Origin: Monocercomonoides exilis PA203
Lineage: Eukaryota > Protista > Preaxostyla
NCBI GenBank assembly: GCA_001643675.2
Contig: LSRY02000013.1
Span: forward strand, 434,001 to 498,000
Direction: 5' to 3'
DNA: 64,000 nucleotides
The notes under the pieces were generated by a model, which saw only the letters and a list, made by a program, of their open reading frames with translations, was not told the DNA's origin and did no database searches. A program made the position numbers and the translations under genes. Shown here piece after piece: positions 15,485-33,532 of this stretch. Every line of letters starts with the position of its first letter. Position 1 is the stretch's first letter.

Positions 15485-16179
15485 AGTAATTCATTCAAAA
15501 ATAACCACATAAACATTTTCAAAATCAAACTTGATTTTCCAGGATAAGTAACTTTAATGCTGTGTTAATTATATTTATGGATGGTTCAGTTTTTCCTCAA
15601 TTTTTTCTGAGTTTTTTAAAAAAATTCAGCAAGTTACACAATAAATTAAAAAATTTCAAATATGATTGTTTTGAATTTTTCCAAAAAAAGGATGTTTGTG
15701 AAATGAAAATTATTAAGAATTGTTTAATGTATTATGAAAATTAGTGCAATGCTATAAACACATACTGAATCATTTTTCTTTTTATCGAAAGAATCATTGA
15801 AAGTTGTATTCTTAAAAATAAGATTAAATTTTTTTAGAATTTTCTCAATATTCAAATTCAAATTTTGTTTTAGAGTAGATGTGTCATTTTACAATGATTC
15901 ACTGTTTTCATTATTTATTAATTTATTTTTGTGGATTGTCAAACTATTCTTATATAATAAAAGTTTTAGCTTTTAAAATTATCCAAAATCAAAACTGAAA
16001 AAGCCTCAATTCATTGAGAATAAGAAGTTGAATAAAGAATAAAAATTAAAACAATTATTGCATGCAGAAACAAAAAGCTCATCAGTTATTTTTCTCACTT
16101 TTTTCATTCCAAGAAAAAACAGAAGTTCTAAAAGATAATTATTAGCCCATGATAAAAAAAGAAAAAAAAATGTTTTGTA

Positions 16180-16544
16180 CAGTCTAAACCGGATATAATC
16201 ACATCAGTTTTTGCACAACTTTTTGTGACTATATCCGATAGTGATAATATCCGATGATGTTTTACACAGAAAAAAATAAAAATAAATAAATATTTAAAAT
16301 AATTTTGGGTTAAATTTTTAATTTTTGAAAATTCTTCATTTAAACGCATTTTTCAATAGAAAAAACTATTTTTTGGATTTTATTATGTTTTTCAGACTTA
16401 TTTTTGCATATTTTTGAAAAATCAAAAAATTGAAAACTTTGATCAAAAAATCGAATTTTCATTGAAAAAAGCACCCATAATGAAAAAATTGTGAATATAT
16501 AATTTCATCTCTGTGATTATAAGCGATGAAAAATGAATGAAAAA
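16180..16544. mobile_element. MITE family A (pogo-like TIR CAGTC(T/A)AAACCGGATATAATCAC, TA-flanked): left part of a copy split by the Merlin insertion
   Basis: Colinear with the first ~365 bp of the intact copy at 29193-29642, up to GATGAAAAATGAATGAAAAA. Confidence 0.85.
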
Positions 16545-16547
16545 GGA

Positions 16548-19500
16548 ATAGGTGTAACTGCGTCCCTTTTGCAATTCTTGTTTTTAGACATTAATTTTGT
16601 GATGTTTGAAATGCAAAAATTATTTAAAAACTTTTGTATGGACCGGTTTTTCGCAAAAATTTTTGTTTCTCATGAAAAAACCATTTTTAAAAATGACCCA
16701 TAAATATGAGTATTTTTTCAGAAAATAAATAAAATAAGATAATTTTGAATAAATAAAATGATATAATGTCATTAATGATTATGTTGTCCAATATTAATAA
16801 TAAAAATTTGAAAAATAAAACATTAAAAAATAATAAATTTAAAAACTAAAATATTTTGATCAATCCCACAATTATATTTTTAATATCCAAAAAATAAGAA
16901 ATTAGTTTCTTTCATCGCGAATTGAACCCTCGTTTGCGAACATATAACGAATCATATATATAAACATAGTTTTAAAGTGTGTGATAAATAATTATCAATA
17001 TATCATTCAAATCTTTATGAATTTTGTATGTGATTTTGAGATGATTATTTTTGTGCAGTTTGAGGATGTTTGTATTTTTCCATGATGATCTTGAACAAAG
17101 AAATACTGATGAGGCTCACGAAGTGTGATTATCGTTTTCTTTTTATTTATTAAAGATTATTTTTACTAAATGTTAAGTAAATCATATGTTTTTAACTGAA
17201 TCAACGCGGATTATCAAATGCTAGAAGAAACCTATAGATAAAACTTTTTCATCAAAGAAATAAGAGATGGAGTGCATTTTGCAACAAATGAAATGATGAA
17301 ATTAAAATTTACATCTGATTCAATGAATTCAGAATAATCTTTTTAAAGGTGGGAATGATTTTTTTGGAAACTGCTACAACCTTTAATCACTGATAAGTGA
17401 GAGTCAATTTCTGTTTGATCTTCGAGAGGAATGTTAGACTTTCCATAATGCGATAGATGGAAGAGATTCCTGTTATTTACCAAATGATACAAATCTTATT
17501 GGATTTATAACCGTCCATCAGAGTTACACAATCATTATGAGCAGCGTGCATGGATCGAATGAAAGGCAATGAAGGGCAAACACATTTCTATGTGATTCAA
17601 TTGATTATGGATTGGTGCATCTGACTGCGGACTTCATCAGCCAGATGCTTGTTGATGGGGAGAGTGCGATCAAGGGGGAAGTGGAACTGGACGAGATGAG
17701 CCTGAGCTCAAGAAGCCGCGATCTGTGCAATGTTGAAGTGGAGTCGAGGATCGAATGCACAAGGGCGGGTGCAATATCGACATCGAACACAGTGACTGTT
17801 TCAAGAGTGAGGTTTGTATTTGTTGTGGAATTTGCATCTTTTCACATTGATCTGGTTGAACCAGACAGTGGATTGGTGGAAATGGTTAACTGCTCGTTCA
17901 GGTCAAAGCACGCTGAACCTGCTGAAGCTCGTTTGCAAGCACAAATACCGTTTCACATTATTCGGATTACCTCGGGGAGATGTGTTCGAGATGGATGCTG
18001 CGTGGAAGATGTTGCGCTTTCGGTGGCTGCAATATGCATTGCATCACCGATCCAATTTGTTGTTTCTTCTTGTGCGTTCTGCAACTTGGCAACCAGCAAT
18101 CCGCTCATTGATGTCACAGGAAGTGGAGAAATTTCTGCGAGTCATCTGGAATTGGCGAATGCCACAATCTCAAAAAGAGGACTTTCTTTGCTATCGTGCT
18201 CAGGTGTGAGAAGCCCAATGATACTTAACAATTGCTCGATTAAAAATTCAGCACAAGACAATTCAAGAGGGATGCTCATCACTTTTTGCAACTGTTCAGA
18301 CGCAGTGATAGACAGTTGCCTCTTGGATGGGAATTCAAGCGAATGCGATACAAAAGAATCACAAAGAAGGTTATCCAACAAAGTGTTTAATGAAGCGGAA
18401 AATGAAATATGCAGATGGAATGGTTCAATTGTTGATTTTTCTAGCAGTTCCGTGATGATGAAAGACACAACAATCTGCAACTCCTCAAAGGGAGGGATGA
18501 CTGTGAGTGGAGGAAGCGTTGGAATTGAAATGGGGTTATTTGAGAATAACAACCCTTCAATAGCAAATTACCCATCATTGAGAAGAAATATCATCTGTTC
18601 AGATTCAGGAACATTGAATGTGATGAGTCTGAAAGGAGGAGATGGATGGGAAAGAAACACATCACTTTGGATGTTGAATGAAGGATGTGAGTTGAGTGGG
18701 ATTGTTTCTGAAAGGGTATCACTATTCTTCGTCCCAGTGTTAGAGAGTGTCGAAGAAAAGGAGAAAGGAGAAGAAATGGAGGTTGTGTTCAAAGGGAAGC
18801 TGCTGCTGCCTTGCAACTTGTCATTCATTGTTGTGAAGCAGATGGGCGATGAAAAGCAGATTGAGAAATATGAGTTTGATGAGAGTGGATATGTGTCTGA
18901 GACAGAAGTTGGAGGGAGACTGAAAAGGGAGATAATTCGTGAGGCAGGAGAGGAGGCAGAGGTGAGAGTGAGCATTCTGTTTGGGGACAGAAATAATCCA
19001 TCATCAACTGATTCTTTCATTCTGAAGAACAGAAGTGAGCCTAAAGCTAATGGGGATGAAAAGATTGTCGAGGGAGGTAAAGAAGGGAAATCGTATTGGT
19101 TGTTGATTGTTTGCATTGTGATTGTTGTTATTCTGGCTGTTCGATGGAGGAAAGTGAAGGAAAGAAATGAGGAATTGCAAGAGATTGTGAATGATAATAT
19201 CAGAAAAGATCCGAAGGCATTTGAGATGGTTACGATGGAGATGTCACCTGAGACTCAGTGGAGGAGAGCAGAAAGAGAAGCTGAGAAGAAGAATGAGGAG
19301 AGGATGAAGAAGAGAATATATGAAAAAAGCCTGGGACATTCAGAATCATCAGAGCATCTTCTGTCTGAGAGTGGCTCAACTGAATATATTCTTGGAAGAG
19401 ATTCAGACAAGATTCCAGAATGGGCATTGGAGAAGGTTGATGATGAGGAAGAGATAAGGAAGAGAACTCAATCTCCATCCATCTCATCCACATCCACCAC

Positions 19501-20279
19501 TGATTCAGATTCAACATTTGTTCGGTCGGAGAGTTTGTGTCCAACTACCTCATCGATGTCGAATCTGGTGGATGCAATGGCCTGCTCGTCTCCCCATGAG
19601 AAGCTGATTGTGGACTTGAGGGATTCGCTGTTCATGCTTCTTCATGGGAGAAATGAGAAAAAAGAGATGGCGATTGGAAGTCTTCAAGAGAGAGAAATGA
19701 CAGCTGCTCAGATCCTGTTCTGGGTGGCTAATCTCGCACTCCATTCATTTGATGAAATGGACAACCCTCTTCAATCATTGGATAATCTGAGTCCTCACAT
19801 TGTGCTGTTCTCTGAACACATGGTCATCTGTATTGTGATGCACTCAGATTTATTGTCTGATAATTCTGACTCATCGTCGATCTCATCATCAACTGTTGTG
19901 ACGTCTGCCAGTGGTGATGATGATGAAGACTCTCTGCCCTCATCTGCATTTGAGGATGAAGATAGTTTCAAAAAAGAGTGTCTGAGGTGGAAGGCGCCAG
20001 AACTGCAGATCAATAAGAAGATGGGGGTAACAAAGAAGTCAGTGGTGTTTTCGATTGGGATGATGTTGTGGGAGTGCTTGACTCTTCAAATCCCATTTGG
20101 AGATTATGAGGCAGAGGTGGCTGGGCAGAAGATAGTGAATGGGGAGCTTCCGAATATTGGGGTGGTTGAGTGCGAGTGGGGAAGAGAGTTTGTGAAGAAG
20201 TGTGTGCTGGGGGATTTGACAGAGAGGCCGACGCTGACAGATGTGAAGCGGTGGCTGATTGGACACTTTCCGGAAGAGG
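16548..20279 (+). repeat. Left inverted arm of the Merlin element (3732 bp)
   Basis: Reverse complement of 22619-26372. The length difference equals one 21-bp indel plus one homopolymer base. Confidence 0.95.
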
Positions 20280-20323
20280 CAATAATTGTGACGGAAGCAG
20301 ATGCAATATTCATTGAAGACTGA
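17612..20323 (+). CDS. Cargo copy 1: 5'-decayed transmembrane receptor-like pseudokinase (Cys-rich beta-solenoid-like ectodomain, TM, Ser-rich linker, kinase C-lobe)
   Basis: 903-aa ORF with TM ...LAVRWRK and kinase subdomain VIII-XI motifs LRWKAPE...SVVFSIGMMLWECLT..IPF...RPTL. Highly similar to 58892-63949. Homologous reading continues upstream (~17350-17611) through in-frame stops, e.g. TGA at 17570. Confidence 0.8.
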   Translation: MVHLTADFISQMLVDGESAIKGEVELDEMSLSSRSRDLCNVEVESRIECTRAGAISTSNTVTVSRVRFVFVVEFASFHIDLVEPDSGLVEMVNCSFRSKHAEPAEARLQAQIPFHIIRITSGRCVRDGCCVEDVALSVAAICIASPIQFVVSSCAFCNLATSNPLIDVTGSGEISASHLELANATISKRGLSLLSCSGVRSPMILNNCSIKNSAQDNSRGMLITFCNCSDAVIDSCLLDGNSSECDTKESQRRLSNKVFNEAENEICRWNGSIVDFSSSSVMMKDTTICNSSKGGMTVSGGSVGIEMGLFENNNPSIANYPSLRRNIICSDSGTLNVMSLKGGDGWERNTSLWMLNEGCELSGIVSERVSLFFVPVLESVEEKEKGEEMEVVFKGKLLLPCNLSFIVVKQMGDEKQIEKYEFDESGYVSETEVGGRLKREIIREAGEEAEVRVSILFGDRNNPSSTDSFILKNRSEPKANGDEKIVEGGKEGKSYWLLIVCIVIVVILAVRWRKVKERNEELQEIVNDNIRKDPKAFEMVTMEMSPETQWRRAEREAEKKNEERMKKRIYEKSLGHSESSEHLLSESGSTEYILGRDSDKIPEWALEKVDDEEEIRKRTQSPSISSTSTTDSDSTFVRSESLCPTTSSMSNLVDAMACSSPHEKLIVDLRDSLFMLLHGRNEKKEMAIGSLQEREMTAAQILFWVANLALHSFDEMDNPLQSLDNLSPHIVLFSEHMVICIVMHSDLLSDNSDSSSISSSTVVTSASGDDDEDSLPSSAFEDEDSFKKECLRWKAPELQINKKMGVTKKSVVFSIGMMLWECLTLQIPFGDYEAEVAGQKIVNGELPNIGVVECEWGREFVKKCVLGDLTERPTLTDVKRWLIGHFPEEAIIVTEADAIFIED

Positions 20324-20734
20324 ATGGGGGCAGTGGATGAAGAAGAAAGTTCACGAGGGGATGAAATTCAGATGAGCATGCGAATGCTTTGAACCATCAT
20401 TTGGAATGGACAAGAGCTGCAGAAAGCGGTGTTGAAAAGAAACTGTCACTGTGCATGGAGAAGGGGAGAGGAAAGAAAATGAAGGACCGCTGGCTATAAA
20501 AAAAAAGAATAACATTACACCACCGCAAACACATCAATTTTGATTTTTTTTTTTGTTGTGTTTTGAAACAACCAAAAAAACTGTGCAATTAATATTTAAA
20601 AAAAAAAATATTTTTTTCCTTAAAAATTTAAAATATAAAAGTGCATATTTCACTCGAATACACAAAAAAAAGAGCCATTATTAATATATATTAATTCAAA
20701 TTTTTAACTTTTGCAAAGTCAATTTATTTCACAA

Positions 20735-22109
20735 ATGGTTGAAAACAAATCATCTGAAAAAGAATTAACATTCAGTGAGTTTTTAATGCAATCGAATGGA
20801 AAAAATCAGTTGGCTATTGAATTGCTGTCCAAATTTGGGATAATTAAAAGGAATCGAATGTGCTGGAAATGTGAAAAAGCAATGGAATTAAGGATGCAAA
20901 AAAAAAGAAAGTGATTACTATGCTTATAAATGCACGAAATGCGGGAAAAATTACAGCTGGAATTATGATTCAATTTTTATGGAATTTCATCTTTCACCAT
21001 TCAAACTTCCATCATTGTTGTATCATTTTTGGTACAAACACTCGATTAAGGAAGTCACTTTTGAATCGAAAATATCAAACAAAACAGTCGTGAAATTATT
21101 CGAAAAGTTAAGAAGGATATGCTGTTATTTTGATGAATTCGAAATGGAAAAAATTGGAAAAGATCGAATAGTGGAAATAGATGAAACTTTAATTCATAAA
21201 AGAAAGAACGGTGTTGGGAGATGCAGAGAACAGTAATGGTTATGGGGAGTAGTAGAGAGAAAAGAAATTGGAAAGCCACAAAAATTGATAGTCGTATTTC
21301 TTCCAGATCGAAAAGCTGATACCATATTGTATTTTGTTAAAAAGAACATTGAAAGATCTTCAACAATAATGACTGATAAATGGTCAGCATATAACTGCAT
21401 TAGTGAAAACGGCTTCACCATTGACAGTGTTAATCATTCTCTCAATTTTGATAAGCCTGAAAATCCTAAAGTTTACACTCAAACAATCGAAAGTGTGTGG
21501 TCTCATCTGAAAAACCACATTCCAAAAAGAGGAAGAACATTCATTAAGACAAAAGAATATGTCTATGAATTTCAATATCGATTCAACAACAGACTCACAC
21601 CTACAGCATATATCAAGGAACTTTCAAAAATCAGCAAGAAAAGTTTGGATATTTTTCTTCGTTCTTACAACGAAAGCGTTGCAAGCTTGAAAAGCATTCT
21701 TCTGAAAGAAAAGAAATTTAAATTGTCTTCTTATTTATTAAAGAAAGAGGAATTGAGAAAAAGAAACAACTATGAAATGTGTGATGAAAATGAACTTGAT
21801 GAAATGTTGAAGAAAAAAAGATCATCAAAGCTAATATCAGATATAAAAGAATCAACAAAATCAAAAAGAAGAAAAATAGATGATGAAGAAGAAAAAGAAG
21901 AGAAAGAAGAGAAAGAAACAGAAACAAAAGTTGAAACTGAAGATGACATATTTTCATCAGACGTTGATTGCAAAACTGCAAGAAAGAAGAAAAAGAAAAG
22001 ATATAGATCATGCGACGGAAGATTTCTGAAAAACAACGACAGCCAACAGTTAAAAACGTTAGAGTTTGAAACCCTAAAGTTTTGTGAAAAAAAAAGAGAG
22101 AAAGATTGA
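20735..22109 (+). pseudogene. Merlin/IS1595 (ISXO2-like) DDE transposase, ~457 aa, with two lesions
   Basis: Zn-ribbon CWKC...CTKC; VEIDET (D), WLWGVVER, LPDRKADT, IMTDKWSAY (D), VNHSLNF, TQTIESVWSHLK (E). One extra A in the A9 run at 20898-20906 and one in-frame TAA at 21234-21236. Confidence 0.9.
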
Positions 22110-22481
22110 AGAAATGAAGAAAAAAGTAAAAGATAAAACAAATGCAATTCTTAATCGAAAAATACAAAGAAGTTTTATTAAATCAACAAATATTGGAACA
22201 CAACAGTCTCCAATAAATTTATGAATTTTTATTTCACAACACTATCAATCATATTACATTTTTATCACGTTGCAAAAAAAAAAACGAATTAACACAAGTG
22301 TTCGTGAATGAATTTCAAATAAAAACAAACTTCATTTCCTTTTAGTGAAATTTGAATTACGCATTTCAATGCAAATGTGAAAACATTCTTGTAATCGTAA
22401 ACATAAATAAGTCCATACGTATATCCATCTACATATAAATTTTCATTTGTTTCATTACATTGTTCCAACCATGCTTCACAG

Positions 22482-25308
22482 TCACAGATTGGCATTAACA
22501 TTTGCTTCACTTATTTGTCCCATCTTCACACACAAGACACAAAAATGCTCAGACAATGCACTCTTTCCAATGGACTCTGCTGCAATCCCGATTGTGTAAC
22601 TCATTGTCTTCACAGTTACCTCTTCCGGAAAGTGTCCAATCAGCCACCGCTTCACATCTGTCAGCGTCGGCCTCTCTGTCAAATCCCCCAGCACACACTT
22701 CTTCACAAACTCTCTTCCCCACTCGCACTCAACCACCCCAATATTCGGAAGCTCCCCATTCACTATCTTCTGCCCAGCCACCTCTGCCTCATAATCTCCA
22801 AATGGGATTTGAAGAGTCAAGCACTCCCACAACATCATCCCAATCGAAAACACCACTGACTTCTTTGTTACCCCCATCTTCTTATTGATCTGCAGTTCTG
22901 GCGCCTTCCACCTCAGACACTCTTTTTTGAAACTATCTTCATCCTCAAATGCAGATGAGGGCAGAGAGTCTTCATCATCATCACCACTGGCAGACGTCAC
23001 AACAGTTGATGATGAGATCGACGATGAGTCAGAATTATCAGACAATAAATCTGAGTGCATCACAATACAGATGACCATGTGTTCAGAGAACAGCACAATG
23101 TGAGGACTCAGATTATCCAATGATTGAAGAGGGTTGTCCATTTCATCAAATGAATGGAGTGCGAGATTAGCCACCCAGAACAGGATCTGAGCAGCTGTCA
23201 TTTCTCTCTCTTGAAGACTTCCAATCGCCATCTCTTTTTTTCTCATTTCTCCCATGAAGAAGCATGAACAGCGAATCCCTCAAGTCCACAATCAGCTTCT
23301 CATGGGGAGACGAGCAGGCCATTGCATCCACCAGATTCGACATCGATGAGGTAGTTGGACACAAACTCTCCGACCGAACAAATGTTGAATCTGAATCAGT
23401 GGTGGATGTGGATGAGATGGATGGAGATTGAGTTCTCTTCCTTATCTCTTCCTCATCATCAACCTTCTCCAATGCCCATTCTGGAATCTTGTCTGAATCT
23501 CTTCCAAGAATATATTCAGTTGAGCCACTCTCAGACAGAAGATGCTCTGATGATTCTGAATGTCCCAGGCTTTTTTCATATATTCTCTTCTTCATCCTCT
23601 CCTCATTCTTCTTCTCAGCTTCTCTTTCTGCTCTCCTCCACTGAGTCTCAGGTGACATCTCCATCGTAACCATCTCAAATGCCTTCGGATCTTTTCTGAT
23701 ATTATCATTCACAATCTCTTGCAATTCCTCATTTCTTTCCTTCACTTTCCTCCATCGAACAGCCAGAATAACAACAATTACAAGCAGAATCACAACAATC
23801 ACAATGCAAACAATCAACAACCAATACGATTTCCCTTCTTTACCTCCCTCGACAATCTTTTCATCCCCATTAGCTTTAGGCTCACTTCTGTTCTTCAGAA
23901 TGAAAGAATCAGTTGATGATGGATTATTTCTGTCCCCAAACAGAATGCTCACTCTCACCTCTGCCTCCTCTCCTGCCTCACGAATTATCTCCCTTTTCAG
24001 TCTCCCTCCAACTTCTGTCTCAGACACATATCCACTCTCATCAAACTCATATTTCTCAATCTGCTTTTCATCGCCCATCTGCTTCACAACAATGAATGAC
24101 AAGTTGCAAGGCAGCAGCAGCTTCCCTTTGAACACAACCTCCATTTCTTCTCCTTTCTCCTTTTCTTCGACACTCTCTAACACTGGGACGAAGAATAGTG
24201 ATACCCTTTCAGAAACAATCCCACTCAACTCACATCCTTCATTCAACATCCAAAGTGATGTGTTTCTTTCCCATCCATCTCCTCCTTTCAGACTCATCAC
24301 ATTCAATGTTCCTGAATCTGAACAGATGATATTTCTTCTCAATGATGGGTAATTTGCTATTGAAGGGTTGTTATTCTCAAATAACCCCATTTCAATTCCA
24401 ACGCTTCCTCCACTCACAGTCATCCCTCCCTTTGAGGAGTTGCAGATTGTTGTGTCTTTCATCATCACGGAACTGCTAGAAAAATCAACAATTGAACCAT
24501 TCCATCTGCATATTTCATTTTCCGCTTCATTAAACACTTTGTTGGATAACCTTCTTTGTGATTCTTTTGTATCGCATTCGCTTGAATTCCCATCCAAGAG
24601 GCAACTGTCTATCACTGCGTCTGAACAGTTGCAAAAAGTGATGAGCATCCCTCTTGAATTGTCTTGTGCTGAATTTTTAATCGAGCAATTGTTAAGTATC
24701 ATTGGGCTTCTCACACCTGAGCACGATAGCAAAGAAAGTCCTCTTTTTGAGATTGTGGCATTCGCCAATTCCAGATGACTCGCAGAAATTTCTCCACTTC
24801 CTGTGACATCAATGAGCGGATTGCTGGTTGCCAAGTTGCAGAACGCACAAGAAGAAACAACAAATTGGATCGGTGATGCAATGCATATTGCAGCCACCGA
24901 AAGCGCAACATCTTCCACGCAGCATCCATCTCGAACACATCTCCCCGAGGTAATCCGAATAATGTGAAACGGTATTTGTGCTTGCAAACGAGCTTCAGCA
25001 GGTTCAGCGTGCTTTGACCTGAACGAGCAGTTAACCATTTCCACCAATCCACTGTCTGGTTCAACCAGATCAATGTGAAAAGATGCAAATTCCACAACAA
25101 ATACAAACCTCACTCTTGAAACAGTCACTGTGTTCGATGTCGATATTGCACCCGCCCTTGTGCATTCGATCCTCGACTCCACTTCAACATTGCACAGATC
25201 GCGGCTTCTTGAGCTCAGGCTCATCTCGTCCAGTTCCACTTCCCCCTTGATCGCACTCTCCCCATCAACAAGCATCTGGCTGATGAAGTCCGCAGTCAGA
25301 TGCACCAA
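22482..25308 (-). pseudogene. Cargo copy 2 of the receptor-like pseudokinase (inverted); +1 frameshift and a different C-terminal tail
   Basis: ORFs 23167-25308 and 22482-23255 match copy 1 except for a 7-aa longer TM segment, a T7 vs A6 homopolymer (23235-23241) and the tail after GHFPEE. Confidence 0.8.
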
Positions 25309-26372
25309 TCCATAATCAATTGAATCACATAGAAATGTGTTTGCCCTTCATTGCCTTTCATTCGATCCATGCACGCTGCTCATAATGATTGTGTAACTCT
25401 GATGGACGGTTATAAATCCAATAAGATTTGTATCATTTGGTAAATAACAGGAATCTCTTCCATCTATCGCATTATGGAAAGTCTAACATTCCTCTCGAAG
25501 ATCAAACAGAAATTGACTCTCACTTATCAGTGATTAAAGGTTGTAGCAGTTTCCAAAAAAATCATTCCCACCTTTAAAAAGATTATTCTGAATTCATTGA
25601 ATCAGATGTAAATTTTAATTTCATCATTTCATTTGTTGCAAAATGCACTCCATCTCTTATTTCTTTGATGAAAAAGTTTTATCTATAGGTTTCTTCTAGC
25701 ATTTGATAATCCGCGTTGATTCAGTTAAAAACATATGATTTACTTAACATTTAGTAAAAATAATCTTTAATAAATAAAAAGAAAACGATAATCACACTTC
25801 GTGAGCCTCATCAGTATTTCTTTGTTCAAGATCATCATGGAAAAATACAAACATCCTCAAACTGCACAAAAATAATCATCTCAAAATCACATACAAAATT
25901 CATAAAGATTTGAATGATATATTGATAATTATTTATCACACACTTTAAAACTATGTTTATATATATGATTCGTTATATGTTCGCAAACGAGGGTTCAATT
26001 CGCGATGAAAGAAACTAATTTCTTATTTTTTGGATATTAAAAATATAATTGTGGGATTGATCAAAATATTTTAGTTTTTAAATTTATTATTTTTTAATGT
26101 TTTATTTTTCAAATTTTTATTATTAATATTGGACAACATAATCATTAATGACATTATATCATTTTATTTATTCAAAATTATCTTATTTTATTTATTTTCT
26201 GAAAAAATACTCATATTTATGGGTCATTTTTAAAAATGGTTTTTTCATGAGAAACAAAAATTTTTGCGAAAAACCGGTCCATACAAAAGTTTTTAAATAA
26301 TTTTTGCATTTCAAACATCACAAAATTAATGTCTAAAAACAAGAATTGCAAAAGGGACGCAGTTACACCTAT
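22619..26372 (-). repeat. Right inverted arm of the Merlin element (3754 bp)
   Basis: Reverse complement of 16548-20279. Confidence 0.95.
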
Positions 26373-26383
26373 GCAATGAAAAA

Positions 26384-26467
26384 CAAACAAAAAATGTCGG
26401 TGTATCGAAAAATGTGACTATAAACGAATGTGATTATATTCGACGTGATTATATCCGGTTTTGACTG
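26384..26467. mobile_element. MITE family A: right part of the split copy
   Basis: CAAACAAAAAATGTCGGTG...GTGATTATATCCGGTTTTGACTG followed by TA; matches the last ~85 bp of 29193-29642. Confidence 0.85.
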
Positions 26468-26744
26468 TATTTTCTTTATATTTAATCAAAAAATGAAATA
26501 TCACGAAATGTTGATCCAATGATCACTTCGATCTGAAATGTGCAAATGAAAAATTCTCTTGAAAAAAAATATTCTAAATAAAAAAAAGTTTTTGCAGAGA
26601 CCACTTACGTATATTTGCATCTTTTAAGAAACAGAGACATTTTTCAAGGATGAAAAATTGTGAATTCCTAAAATTCTCAAAGTTTTTCCAATTTTTTCTA
26701 CTGATCAAAAACTTTAAAGTTAATTTATCCATTTATTTTATCAA

Positions 26745-28017
26745 GGGTCAGCTTTTTAATGGGACTTTTTCCTTAATTGGCACTTTTTTTGTTTTTGCTT
26801 GCAAAATTCTGAGAAATGAGAAGTAGTTTTCAGCATTTTAAAAATCCTTTTTAACAAGTTTTATTCTATTTATTTGAAGTTTGTTTTTATGTGGGTGATT
26901 ATTTTTGAAATCATATCTTTTTTCGGTTTGTTGATTTTTCGAAGATTGCTCGTTTTTTGAAAGAAAATTTTAATTCAACAGAGAAAAAGCATGATTGTTG
27001 TTTTTTTAAAAACAAATGGTTTTTCCGAATCAAAGATTAAAATGCATTCAATAAGCCTTTTCACTTTTCTTTTTTTTTTTTTAAATTGATATTCTGGAAA
27101 TATTTTAGCAACGAAATTTCAATATGAAATAACATGATTTCAAAAAGAATCACCCATATTTTTACTTATTACACATTGAGAAATTTCGTTTTTTTGTTAA
27201 ATTTAAAAGGACTTTTTCTAGCCAACTGGGAATCGCTCAAAATATTGGGGACATGTTTTATAAAGCATTTTCTTCGAACTATTAATCATTAAAACCTTTT
27301 TTTTCACAAACATTTTTTTCTTGTTTTTTTCGCATTTCAAATTTTCATCAACATGATAACATAAAACTGTTTATTTCTTTATTAATATAATGAAATGACA
27401 AAAATAAAAATATGATATGAATGACAAGCACTTTTAAAATCAAGTGTTGCGAGAATGAAACACTAATTCTTTGTATTTGTCTTTTACAGACAAATGGCAC
27501 CCGCTACTTTTGATCTTCGATCAAACTTTTGTTACCATGTTCAGCTAAAGACAAATAAAAAAATTTAATGTTTTATTTTTTTCAACACTTCATTATAAAA
27601 GTATTTGTTATTCATATCATATTTTTATTTTTTTCATTCCATTATATTAATAAAGAAATAATCAGTTTTATGTTAGCATGTTGAAAATTTGAAATGTGAA
27701 AAAAACAAGAAAAAAATGTTTGTGAAAAAAAAGATTTTAAAGATTAATAGTTCGAAGCAAATGCTATTTAAAACATGTCCCCAATATTTTGAGCGATTCC
27801 CAGTTGGCTAGAAAAAGTCCTTTTAAATTTAACAAAAAAACGAAATTTCTCGATGTGTAATAAGTTAAAATATAAAAACAAACTTCAAATAAATAGAATA
27901 AAACTTGTTAAAAAGGATTTTTAAAATGCTGAAAACTACTTCTCATTTCTCAGAATTTTGCAAGCAAAAACAAAAAAAGTGCCAATTAAGGAAAAAGTCC
28001 CATTAAAAAGCTGACAC
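26745..28017. mobile_element. Non-coding foldback element with ~430-bp inverted arms; left arm interrupted by MITE B
   Basis: GTCAGCTTTTTAATGGGACTTTTTCC... at 26747 vs ...GGAAAAAGTCCCATTAAAAAGCTGAC at 28015. Arms stay complementary inward to ~27449/27583. Confidence 0.75.
26892..27156. mobile_element. MITE family B (265 bp), TIR TGGGTGATT(A/C)TTTTTGAAATCAT, probable TA target
   Basis: Present in the left arm of the foldback and absent from the right arm, which shows the empty site; clear TIRs. Confidence 0.8.
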
Positions 28018-29192
28018 TATAAAAGATATGGTGAGAAATTTTCATTTTCAGACAAACGTTCCACACACAATATAAGATTTTTCCATATTCTGTTTTAGTC
28101 TAAAAAATTAATTTTTATTTATTTATTTATTTTTTTTTATTTTTTAATTTTCGTTTTTATTTTTTTTTTTTTTTTTTATTTTTGTAATAATTTTTGCCAT
28201 ATCCCAATTCACTTTTATATCAAAAAAATCTTAATAAATGAAAGTCAACCTGTGAGGTCATATCTGAACCAAAATCCTGCAAGTTTTCATGATTTATGAC
28301 AAAATCATAAAAACAGGACGGATATGACCTTGACCTCAATAATTTTTCATATTTCATTGGGTAAGCTTAGAATTTCATTTATTAATTATTTTATTATTTT
28401 TTTTACTGAATTTTTAATCAAAAATATTATTGAAATGAAAAACATTTGAAGATAATGACATACTTGGAGAAATCAATTCTTCTTCAGAGCTGCTAAAATT
28501 TTGTTGAAAAAGAATAGGTGAATTTTCAGAAAAAAACAATAAACCTGAATTGTCTGTTGATGAATTTGAATTAAAAAGATCACTTGAATGACAATTGTGA
28601 TATGAAAAAGAGTTATTTGAATTGGAAGAAAAAGAATTATTACTTGAAGAATTATTGAAACACATGTTTTGTTCATCAATTTTATTATAATCTTTTATCA
28701 AAGATAATCTTTCTTTGATCATTTTTCTCACGCCCTTTCCCATCATTCCTCGATTATCTCCAGCCATGTCAATCTTCGAAGTTCTATTGAAATATTTTCT
28801 TTCATTTTTATCTTCTCTAACACTTTCTGCGAATGATAGTTGAAAGCATCTCGATGTTATCATGCCACTTAAAGGAGATCCATAGAGTTTTCCATTTTCC
28901 TTGAAAAAATGCAAGTATTTTTTCATTCCTTTCACGGACATTTCTCCCCACATGAAACAGTTTCCAGGCTGATGTCTGTATTAACACATTAATTCAAACA
29001 ATTCAAATGAAATCACACACTGAAAATCAGAAATTATGAAAAAAATATGAAGGACAGACTTTTATAAATAATGCTTTATTGAATAATTAATTTTGAAGGA
29101 GTTATCTTCAGATATCGCATTGCTTTGATAATTCTCTCAGAACGGTCATCTTGTTTGTTGAACATGTGAATTTGTTGAACAAGGAAGATATA

Positions 29193-29642
29193 CAGTCAAA
29201 ACCGGATATAATCACATCGGTTTTTGCACAACTTTATGTGACTATATCCGATTGTGATTAAACACGATGCTGTTAAACACATAAATAAATAAAAATTAAT
29301 AAATAAAATAAGTAAATTTGGGTCGATTTTTTTATTTTTGGAAATTCTACACAAATACACTTTTTTCACTTGCTTGAACAATTTTGATCATAAATACACA
29401 TTATTTTGACTTATTTGAGCACATTTTTGAAAAATCAAAAAATTAAAATTTTTGATCAAAAAATCGATTTTTCATTGAAAAAATCACACATTATAATAAA
29501 AAATGTGATTATACATTTTCTTCACTGTGATTATATGCGATGAAAAATGAATGAAAAACAAGCAAAAAATGTCGGTGCATCGAAAAATGTGACTAAAGGC
29601 GAATGTGATTATATTCGACGTGATTATATCCGGTTTAGACTG
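29193..29642 (+). mobile_element. MITE family A, intact (450 bp)
   Basis: TIRs CAGTCAAAACCGGATATAATCAC / GTGATTATATCCGGTTTAGACTG; TA on the left flank. Confidence 0.9.
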
Positions 29643-29699
29643 AATTGTTGAAGAATCATCTTTATCTCCAAATAAATATGAGTTGCATTGGCCACAGAA

Positions 29700-31880: not shown

Positions 31881-32271
31881 TTTTATAAATTATCTAATCA
31901 CAGACTAATAATAAACACTATTCAAAAAATTGAGTGTTAGAAAAACGACAAAATGATTAAATCTCATTATATTAAAAATGAACAGAAATATCTTAATGAT
32001 GATAATAAATGGTCAATAATAGATTCGAATGCAAAAATTAAAACAAATGATATTCTTTTGAATTCTTTCTTGCTTCAGCTGAAAACCGATTGAAATCAAT
32101 GTTAATTTCATCGGATTCGATTATCTTTCAGTTAACATTTCTATATTCTTCATGAAGGAGGGAGACATATTTATATTTATTTGCTATGTTTTAACAAGAA
32201 GAACAAGAGATCATTACTGGATAAGTTTTTATCGAAGGAGAAGATATAAAAGCGAATGATAGAAGCAATTA

Positions 32272-32721
32272 CAGTCTAAACCGGATATAATCACGTCGAA
32301 TATAATCACATTCGCCTTTAGTCACATTTTTCGATGCACCGACATTTTTTGCTTGTTTTTCATTCATTTTTCATCGCATATAATCACAGTGAAGAAAATG
32401 TATAATCACATTTTTTATTATAATGTGTGATTTTTTCAATGAAAAATCGATTTTTTGATCAAAAATTTTAATTTTTTGATTTTTCAAAAATGTGCTCAAA
32501 TAAGTCAAAATAATGTGTATTTATGATCAAAATTGTTCAAGCAAGTGAAAAAAGTGTATTTGTGTAGAATTTCCAAAAATAAAAAAATCGACCCAAATTT
32601 ACTTATTTTATTTATTAATTTTTATTTATTTATGTGTTTAACAGCATCGTGTTTAATCACAATCGGATATAGTCACATAAAGTTGTGCAAAAACCGATGT
32701 GATTATATCCGGTTTTGACTG
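32272..32721 (-). mobile_element. MITE family A, intact (450 bp), inverted copy of 29193-29642
   Basis: Appears to be the exact reverse complement of 29193-29642 (the same 61-aa shadow ORF occurs on opposite strands); TA on both flanks. Confidence 0.9.
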
Positions 32722-33532
32722 TACTTCAACGAGTCCCACAAGCTGGAAGCAATTGTCGCAGACAAAAGAGGAGCAGAAGATCAGGATTTTGCAGAAGGAG
32801 AAGAAAAGAGAAGAGCAATATGAGAGAGAAAGAGAAGTGCGTGATATATGCAACCTCACTCCAATGAAGTCCGCAACGAAACGAACATAAAGAAAGAACA
32901 AATGTGATTTGGAGCTACTGAGGGAGTGGCAAAGAAGCGTTTAAGGAGGAAGAAGGATGGCTCACGGCAACGATATAAGTGGAGTAATTGGATCTCAAAC
33001 TTCCTTGTTGAATTCTTCTTTCAGCTCATTAAATGGTCTGGTTCGGTTTCTGTTTCCGTTCTATTGTATTCTCAACAGGGATTGGTATAGCAGGTGTCGT
33101 GCAACACCAGGAAATTTGGTGCGTTCAATAGCTAAATCCAACAGGAGCAATGAACAAGCAAAGCATCGAAGTTCGTTTGTTTCATTTGAGAATGCAAGAG
33201 CCAAATGAAGGAGGAAGAGGGCATAAATGGAAGATATCGCTGTTGAAAGAGAAGTTTGATGGATTCAATGGACTGCAGGATTTTGATGAATACAATTTGT
33301 TAGAAGAGATGAAGAGTTTTCTTGGCGAGGAAGATGAGGAATGTGAATGAAATAACCATTGGAGGGAGTCAGGTCAGAAGATATTTTTTATATGTCTTTC
33401 AAAAGCAGCTCGACTTACAGAGAATTTGAATAGCACTGAGCTTCTTTTTTCATGAATATATTTCTGTTTCTGCCTCCGCTCAGTGTGAACAAAAATGGAG
33501 AAATTTCTTCTGTTTCTTCTTCTTCAGTTTCT

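Follow-up and report, generated by a model that had tools for sequence, protein, structure and literature searches.

A decayed Merlin element with kilobase inverted arms and a host receptor fragment in Monocercomonoides exilis

Host gene fragments are carried and multiplied, sometimes in chimeric form, by Pack-MULEs, CACTA elements and Helitrons; Pack-type elements lack a transposase and hold varied fragments between short ends. Bacterial composite transposons (Tn5/Tn10) have kilobase inverted arms, each a mobile element in its own right that possesses both ends. In Galileo (P superfamily, Drosophila), terminal repeats grow, to about 1.25 kb, by taking in internal sequence (PMC3573991). Merlin, related to bacterial IS1016/IS1595, is among the less studied superfamilies of DNA transposons; its published terminal repeats measure 24-462 bp, and its target-site duplications 8-9 bp (PMC8101967). 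For Monocercomonoides sp. PA203, more than 100 Merlin copies of at least seven families were reported, with 23-29-bp repeats and no mention of cargo (PMC8101967). The present analysis concerned a Merlin element of 9830 bp with two inverted arms of approximately 3.74 kb (16545-26374) in a stretch of 64,000 nt of the Monocercomonoides exilis PA203 genome (GCA_001643675.2, contig LSRY02000013.1, positions 434,001 to 498,000). The whole stretch is referred to as the window, and coordinates given without a contig are those of the window.

The window element is a decayed member of a Merlin family with kilobase, self-homogenising arms that contain a rewritten host receptor fragment. The family resembled the Merlin superfamily in its DDE_Tnp_IS1595 domain, 8-bp duplications, GG consensus ends, single transposase gene and many decayed copies, but differed from it in the length of its repeats (0.3-3.7 kb) and in host gene material, which was always present in this family and is present in none of the published elements. 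Like Pack-type carriers it contained a host gene fragment, and its short members (L036-L044) fit the Pack pattern; unlike them, the window element had a transposase pseudogene and its sisters had intact ones, and one gene family was fixed inside the inverted arms and rewritten by host paralogues. As in composite transposons, kilobase inverted arms flanked a centre and the whole moved as a unit, but the arms had no inner ends. With Galileo and Foldback-like elements the family shared a repeat length that varies greatly between copies, growth of the repeats at the expense of internal sequence, and chimeras formed by recombination (PMC3573991). Galileo differs in its transposase superfamily, in having its longest repeats in copies without transposase, and in repeats that hold tandem repeats and not protein-coding fragments of host genes (PMC3573991). 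No published description of this architecture, nor of a Merlin element with gene capture, was found in the literature, and in the supplementary files of PMC8101967 that were searched, the end motif of the present family occurred once, outside the family alignments, in a file of raw contigs.

The preferred reading, held with good confidence, is that the window element is a non-autonomous copy of a cut-and-paste Merlin family with a fixed, ancient receptor fragment, arms that were homogenised against each other, and a cargo rewritten by host sequence. Read in this way, the family clearly exemplifies a mobile element in which part of its host's largest gene family has become a permanent component, with sequence exchange between the two still going on, and shows both arm growth and the upkeep of arm identity through arm-to-arm copying.

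The element was inserted into a miniature inverted-repeat transposable element (MITE), and its boundaries and arms were placed as follows:

16177-16544 (no strand): left part of the host MITE (~467 bp, interrupted), whose right part is at 26384-26482, from the empty-site alignment.
16536-16544 (no strand): left target-site duplication, AATGAAAAA (by the family norm ATGAAAAA, 8 bp), single in intact MITE copies.
16545-26374 (+): whole Merlin element, 9830 bp, from its arms, family ends and duplications.
16545-17102 (+): terminal and subterminal region, family-specific, 83-92% identical to sister copies.
16545-20282 (+): left inverted arm, from paired blocks and global alignment.
22616-26374 (-): right inverted arm, with the 21 nt lost from the left arm (~23780-23800) and an extra A (~23240).
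26375-26383 (no strand): right target-site duplication, single in intact MITE copies.

AATGAAAAA was present on both sides of the element, and the rebuilt empty site aligned unbroken over the junction to 29191-29646 (+) and 32724-32255 (-) with 83% identity; both of these intact MITE copies contained AATGAAAAA once. The duplication and the empty site together indicate the insertion of a unit bounded by the ends of the window element. A reading made earlier from the sequence alone (the sequence-only reading) had described an insertion into a MITE with its empty site preserved in intact copies, which the unbroken alignment bore out, and a 9-bp direct repeat, which is indeed found at both ends; because sister copies make 8-bp duplications, the duplication may instead be ATGAAAAA (8 bp), with the last base of the right tip changed. 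The tips (left, GGAATAGGTG; right, on the opposite strand, GCATAGGTG) both departed slightly from the family consensus GGCATAGGTG. The consensus started with GG at both ends (GGCATAGGTGTAAC), as did the left tip of the window element (GGAAT), and at the right tip the last base was changed or missing relative to this GG consensus. Pairing of 16548-20282 with 22616-26372 gave three blocks of 2593, 548 and 625 nt, each 100% identical, and in the global alignment the sole differences between the arms were a 21-nt indel (~19120 in the left arm, ~23780-23800 in the right arm), a 1-nt A indel (~19657 and ~23240, respectively) and the tips. The inverted arms of the sequence-only reading were therefore real, with lengths, counted from the first paired base, of 3735 and 3757 nt instead of 3732 and 3754.

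The ~467-bp MITE, which had short terminal inverted repeats of its own, was present in three copies within 16 kb (16177-16544 plus 26384-26482; 29191-29646; 32255-32724), one of them split by the Merlin element.

The two arms each contained receptor sequence pointing inward:

17612-20323 (+): open 903-codon receptor fragment in the left arm, made up of a portion of the ectodomain, a membrane-spanning segment that lacks 7 residues, and a kinase-like C-lobe.
22482-25308 (-): receptor fragment in the right arm, split into open reading frames 25308-23167 and 23255-22482 by a 1-nt indel.

The open reading frames of both arms (903 amino acids on the left) matched only the C-lobe of the kinase domain (PF07714, expect value [E] 4e-6, profile positions 163-256), with TNNI3K, ILK and DLK as the closest solved relatives, and the kinase-like domain of the cargo appears to be catalytically dead. 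The cargo matched more than 3,000 candidate places in the genome. The match was always at the 3' end of the host paralogue frames, which were typically about 2,650-2,750 codons long and in some cases up to 4,494, and the arm thus holds the last third (~900 codons) of receptor genes of ~2,700-4,100 codons. Upstream of the cargo, none of the frames of 16545-17611 supplied a start codon or signal peptide. The largest gene family of M. exilis is that of the tyrosine-kinase-like proteins (PMC6759080), and to judge from these matches the 903-codon frame is a fragment of a member of the tyrosine-kinase-like receptor family. The receptor-pseudokinase reading frames placed in each arm by the sequence-only reading were confirmed as inward-pointing and of the kinase family, but were 3' fragments and not whole genes. 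In annotation, kinase reading frames in such arms are to be flagged as transposon-borne fragments and not as host genes.

The fragment was a fixed part of the family. The genome searched was an 82.3-Mb assembly of 101 contigs, in which the first 300 bp of the element found at least 40 places, many in facing pairs, and a 24-mer end motif (at most 3 mismatches) found 52 ends (27 forward, 25 reverse; control, 0), among them five solo ends and about 23 pairs with spacings of 2.7-13.9 kb. Duplications of 8 bp were found in 11 copies, 10 of which were counted as sister copies. The receptor fragment was present in all of the 18 elements examined (18/18), at the same place inside the left subterminal region and pointing inward. 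The sequence-only reading had asked for further loci linking these ends to kinase cargo, and every one of the 18 did so; the cargo was not captured at this locus and is an old fragment fixed across the family. Short copies had repeats of 314-498 bp, a single fragment and no transposase. In four copies (C19, C8, C61 and C21), whose arms measured 0.86-2.5 kb, a single fragment preceded the transposase, and six copies (the window element, C40, C13, C25:1445505, C80 and C25:1201151) had the fragment in both arms. All sisters, single-cargo copies among them, had cargo, transposase and right segment in the same collinear order. The 366 bp just to the right of the transposase (22250-22615) held an old, diverged receptor tail and occurred, with 90-93% identity, in the six double-armed copies only; this private segment suggests that the double-armed layout had a single origin and then spread.

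A longer receptor fragment (~1,830-1,870 codons), starting ~720 nt from the tip, was present in the C61 (L034+L046, C61:436076-450312) and C21 (L041+L048) sisters, whose 2.5-kb arms contained its first ~586 codons; these copies are probably closer to the original capture. At C25:1200651-1214579 (L045+L050), a 3.9-kb non-autonomous copy (duplication ACTTCAAT) was nested in a 12.9-kb double-armed copy (duplication CAAAAAAG), which is self-insertion within the Merlin family. At positions 3-515 of L039 (C52:363561-369547), kinase homology of the left flank (residues 644-807) reached the tip of a non-autonomous sister, for which a receptor gene may have been the insertion target.

Arm identity was 96.7-100% within copies and 79-89% between copies over the same regions. 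Trees built from the arms of the elements, one over their inner 1,100 nt and one over their outer 1,000 nt, paired left and right arms by element with 100/100 support; grouping by side was confined to the recent pair C40/C13. The arms of C40 and C80 showed sharply bounded divergent patches in otherwise identical sequence. Pairing by element, combined with a single origin of the double-armed layout, argues for repeated arm-to-arm homogenisation. Copies differed in how far inward their arms extended, with arm lengths of 0.3 to 3.7 kb over the family, and the arms of the window element reached 125 nt deeper than those of the sisters.

The following tracts were distinguished in the left cargo and upstream of it:

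17346-17596 (+): decayed older layer of receptor cargo, non-coding, with ~75% identity to the coding cargo of the C61 copy.
17597-20146 (+): cargo core, whose outer part (to ~18500) was closest to host clade X and Merlin copy C58:91947.
19172-20559 (+): C69-type tract, comprising the cytoplasmic part, the stop codon and, beyond it, 237 nt of 3' flank; the portion 20283-20559 is unique to the left.

DNA homology to host receptor genes started sharply at 17597. Cargo residues 1-334 were 89-92% identical to clade X, which consisted of host genes on C9 and C55 (one 4,130-codon frame) and Merlin copy C58:91947, and at most 48% identical to other paralogues; in the C58 copy, the outer cargo and the junction were 97-100% identical to those of the window element. 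Cargo residues 521-903 were closest to six C69 genes (84-87% amino acid identity), the outer parts of which were only 44% identical to the window cargo. The DNA match to C69 (89-91%) ran past the stop codon and 237 nt into the 3' flank, up to 20559, where homology to sister elements resumed, and the host-type 3' flank was confined to the left. At its 5' end, the C69-type tract was bracketed as starting between ~18500 and 19172, with the C69 genes and most host paralogues compared through search tables. Identical runs of 119-195 nt against single host genes, at an overall identity of ~88%, were much too long to be due to chance (probability about 1e-5 to 1e-8). The decayed remnant upstream of 17597 makes this position the edge of a later overwrite and not the original capture point. 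Judged by these tracts, two or more host lineages are combined in the window cargo as a mosaic, and ectopic conversion from host paralogues would have overwritten it patch by patch. In the sequences compared, flow was seen from host to element only; no flow from element to host was seen in a test with one element-specific segment, which was absent from host genes.

The inner end of the arm, which is of C69 type, continued as C69 type only on the left, and the last copying thus appears to have run from left to right. The 21 nt missing from the left arm had been lost between short direct repeats and corresponded to seven residues of the membrane span; the segment was present in the right arm, C9 and C58. 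In the lineage of six copies, the left end with its cargo is present, inverted, at the right end too. In the proposed history, after the lineages split the arms of each element would have been homogenised repeatedly by arm-to-arm gene conversion. In the window element, a clade-X-type tract and then a C69-type tract, including its 3' flank, would have entered the left arm, which would then have been copied onto the right arm up to 20282 and would afterwards have lost the 21 nt. Any later movement of the window element would need an intact sister transposase.

Clade X host genes without Merlin ends or transposase sat in large tail-to-tail palindromes. A C9 palindrome (L054+L055, C9:1817600-1837599) had arms of at least 5.08 kb with 98.9% identity and a 164-nt spacer, the C55 palindrome (L053, C55:203300-213299) had arms of 3.94 kb with 99.9% identity and a 115-nt spacer, and a second C9 palindrome (L052, C9:1741500-1751499) had arms of at least 2.7 kb and a 450-nt spacer. 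In this genome, then, receptor 3' ends occur as inverted duplicates outside transposons too.

The centre between the arms (20283-22615) contained the following features:

20735-22109 (+): Merlin/IS1595 DDE transposase pseudogene, from PF12762, with lesions mapped against an intact sister.
22250-22615 (-): right-unique segment with the old element-type receptor tail (reading-frame tail 22615-22482), found only in the six double-armed copies.

The single gene of the centre, with its ATG at 20735, matched PF12762 (DDE_Tnp_IS1595, E 2.6e-17). Relative to the C13 sister, it had an extra A in an A-run at ~20898, an extra A at ~22087, a nonsense change from CAA to TAA at 21234-21236, and an in-frame loss of 54 nt in an acidic repeat. 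Both homopolymer lesions could be errors of Oxford Nanopore Technologies (ONT) sequencing, which is less likely for the nonsense change; with its transposase broken, the window element is probably non-autonomous. An intron or an alternative genetic code behind the TAA was ruled out, since the intact sister has CAA there in an uninterrupted frame. The intact transposase on C13 (L033:3739-5277, - strand) had 513 uninterrupted codons, and that of the C61 sister 507 open codons. In the C13 protein (513 residues), PF12762 matched with E 7.3e-21 over profile positions 6-153 of 153, and IVEIDET, SDKWSAY and VNHS...TQTIESVW, read by eye, are candidates for the three Merlin blocks with the conserved D, D and E residues. 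No inner terminal repeats or duplication were found in the centre, where there were only AT-rich chance matches, and with at most 3 mismatches the family end motif occurred in the whole window only at 16548 and 26372. The sequence-only reading had called the element Merlin/IS1595-type with a central ISXO2-type DDE transposase, and had named a nested insertion of the transposase as what would refute it: the domain match, the 8-bp duplications and the GG consensus tips settle the superfamily as Merlin, the transposase is there although broken in this element, and the end motif is confined to the outer ends.

At residues ~43-70, the intact sister transposase had an N-terminal CxxC...CxxC zinc-ribbon-like motif, with a weak rubredoxin-type Pfam match (E 0.0035). 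Merlin transposases are said to be without the N-terminal zinc finger of IS1595 (PMC8101967).

Mobility of the double-armed unit was evident from C40 and C13, which were 99.9% identical over 8.2 kb beginning exactly at the tips, with unrelated flanks and different 8-bp duplications (CTCCTAAC and AGAAAAAG). A 500-nt patch in which the two arms of C40 differ was the same in C13, which shows that both arms were copied together, and near-identity at unrelated sites with different duplications shows that the double-armed unit jumps whole. The double-armed C13 copy is also the one with the intact transposase. Merlin transposase thus moves units with 2.7-kb inverted arms and, by extension, would move those with 3.7-kb arms. 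Since perfect arms come from arm-to-arm copying, the unit that landed in the window may have had shorter or less similar arms, and the duplication and empty site of the window element do not date the present length and identity of its arms to the insertion. The transposition of the whole unit, as claimed in the sequence-only reading, is proved by C40/C13 for the double-armed layout, with this reservation for the arms of the window unit.

Several observations weigh against parts of the preferred reading. Candidate donors were only 85-95% identical, so that either the true donors are not among them or the events are old; the order of insertion, host-to-element conversion and arm copying is not fixable for the window element; other copies of the exact version with 3.7-kb arms were absent, the best other end being 92% identical; and a recognisable duplication was absent in 2/6 double-armed copies (C25a and C80). 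Ten rounds of Pilon on an ONT assembly could have inflated arm identity, and the homopolymer indels could be explained by polishing or ONT error. The ratio of nonsynonymous to synonymous substitution rates (dN/dS) was ~0.2 between the window cargo and its closest relatives, which, with the open 903-codon frame, would also fit selection on the cargo itself, something the preferred reading has no need of. This ratio can reflect selection on the donor host genes, and since several sister cargoes were broken by stops or frameshifts, steady selection on the element-borne copies is not indicated. The open frame, the low dN/dS and the universal retention of the fragment leave room for the receptor fragment to be a maintained module in two-way sequence trade with more than 3,000 host genes, the elements shuttling and recombining ectodomain and cytoplasmic segments of receptors from locus to locus. 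This was thought rather unlikely; if true, a second copy, able to correct itself, would be provided by the inverted arms.

Among the rival explanations, it is possible, though doubtful, that the arms grew in place, that is, that shorter or more divergent arms, comparable to the 2.7-kb arms of the sisters, landed, that conversion at this locus later gave them their 3.7-kb length, perfect identity and host-type cargo, and that the present unit never jumped. Arms 100% identical to each other with host-like tracts 5-15% from any host gene, an inner limit 125 nt beyond that of the sisters, the lack of a second copy of the 3.7-kb-arm version, and tips that both differ from the consensus all agree with this explanation. 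The sisters prove, however, that 2.7-kb double arms transpose, and the outer cargo and junction shared with C58 (97-100%) indicate that this portion was carried by a mobile relative earlier than, or independently of, its presence here; the insertion itself is not datable from sequence. A distinctly unlikely rival is the recent capture of complete, working receptor-kinase genes, two of which would be spread by each jump as the main engine of family expansion. Such a capture would agree with the open frame in the left arm and its dN/dS, with a whole unit bounded by a duplication at a site whose empty form is present, and with the unexplained overlap of unclassified repeats and tyrosine-kinase genes in the M. 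exilis genome paper (PMC8767320), but the frame covers no more than the final third of genes that run to 2,650-4,494 codons, without the start region, and the cargo junction is common to the whole family, with an older, decayed layer upstream. Moreover, many sister cargoes were broken, the left copy lacks seven membrane-span residues and the right copy is frameshifted. With about 52 ends against more than 3,000 receptor candidates, the family cannot be a main driver of kinase-family expansion, which the sequence-only reading had suggested such an element could help to drive. Being small, the present family explains only part of the overlap reported in PMC8767320.

It was considered very improbable that the inverted duplication is a product of the assembler or of polishing, or owes its perfect identity to them. 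The assembly was indeed built from ONT reads by Canu, with Nanopolish and ten rounds of Pilon (PMC8767320), but the locus has indirect support: the arms are separated by a unique 2.3-kb centre that contains a coherent gene, the two halves of a single MITE adjoin one arm each, with the duplication, the layout recurs with non-identical arms at five further loci on other contigs, and C40 and C13 show the same arm differences. An origin from independent parts, either as a small Merlin within a receptor palindrome or as two non-autonomous elements flanking a transposase in composite fashion, was regarded as extremely improbable. Tail-to-tail receptor palindromes free of Merlin do occur in the genome (C9, C55), but the arms of the window element start at Merlin tips and not within host sequence, the end motif is restricted to 16548 and 26372, the centre is without inner terminal repeats or duplication, and the segment order from cargo through transposase to the right segment is collinear in all sisters. 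Nested insertion and a composite transposon are refuted by the absent inner ends together with this shared collinearity.

Just to the right of the insertion site, at 26762-28000, nested inverted repeats with arms of 113-195 nt and 88-100% identity were clustered; they are probably foldback or MITE material.

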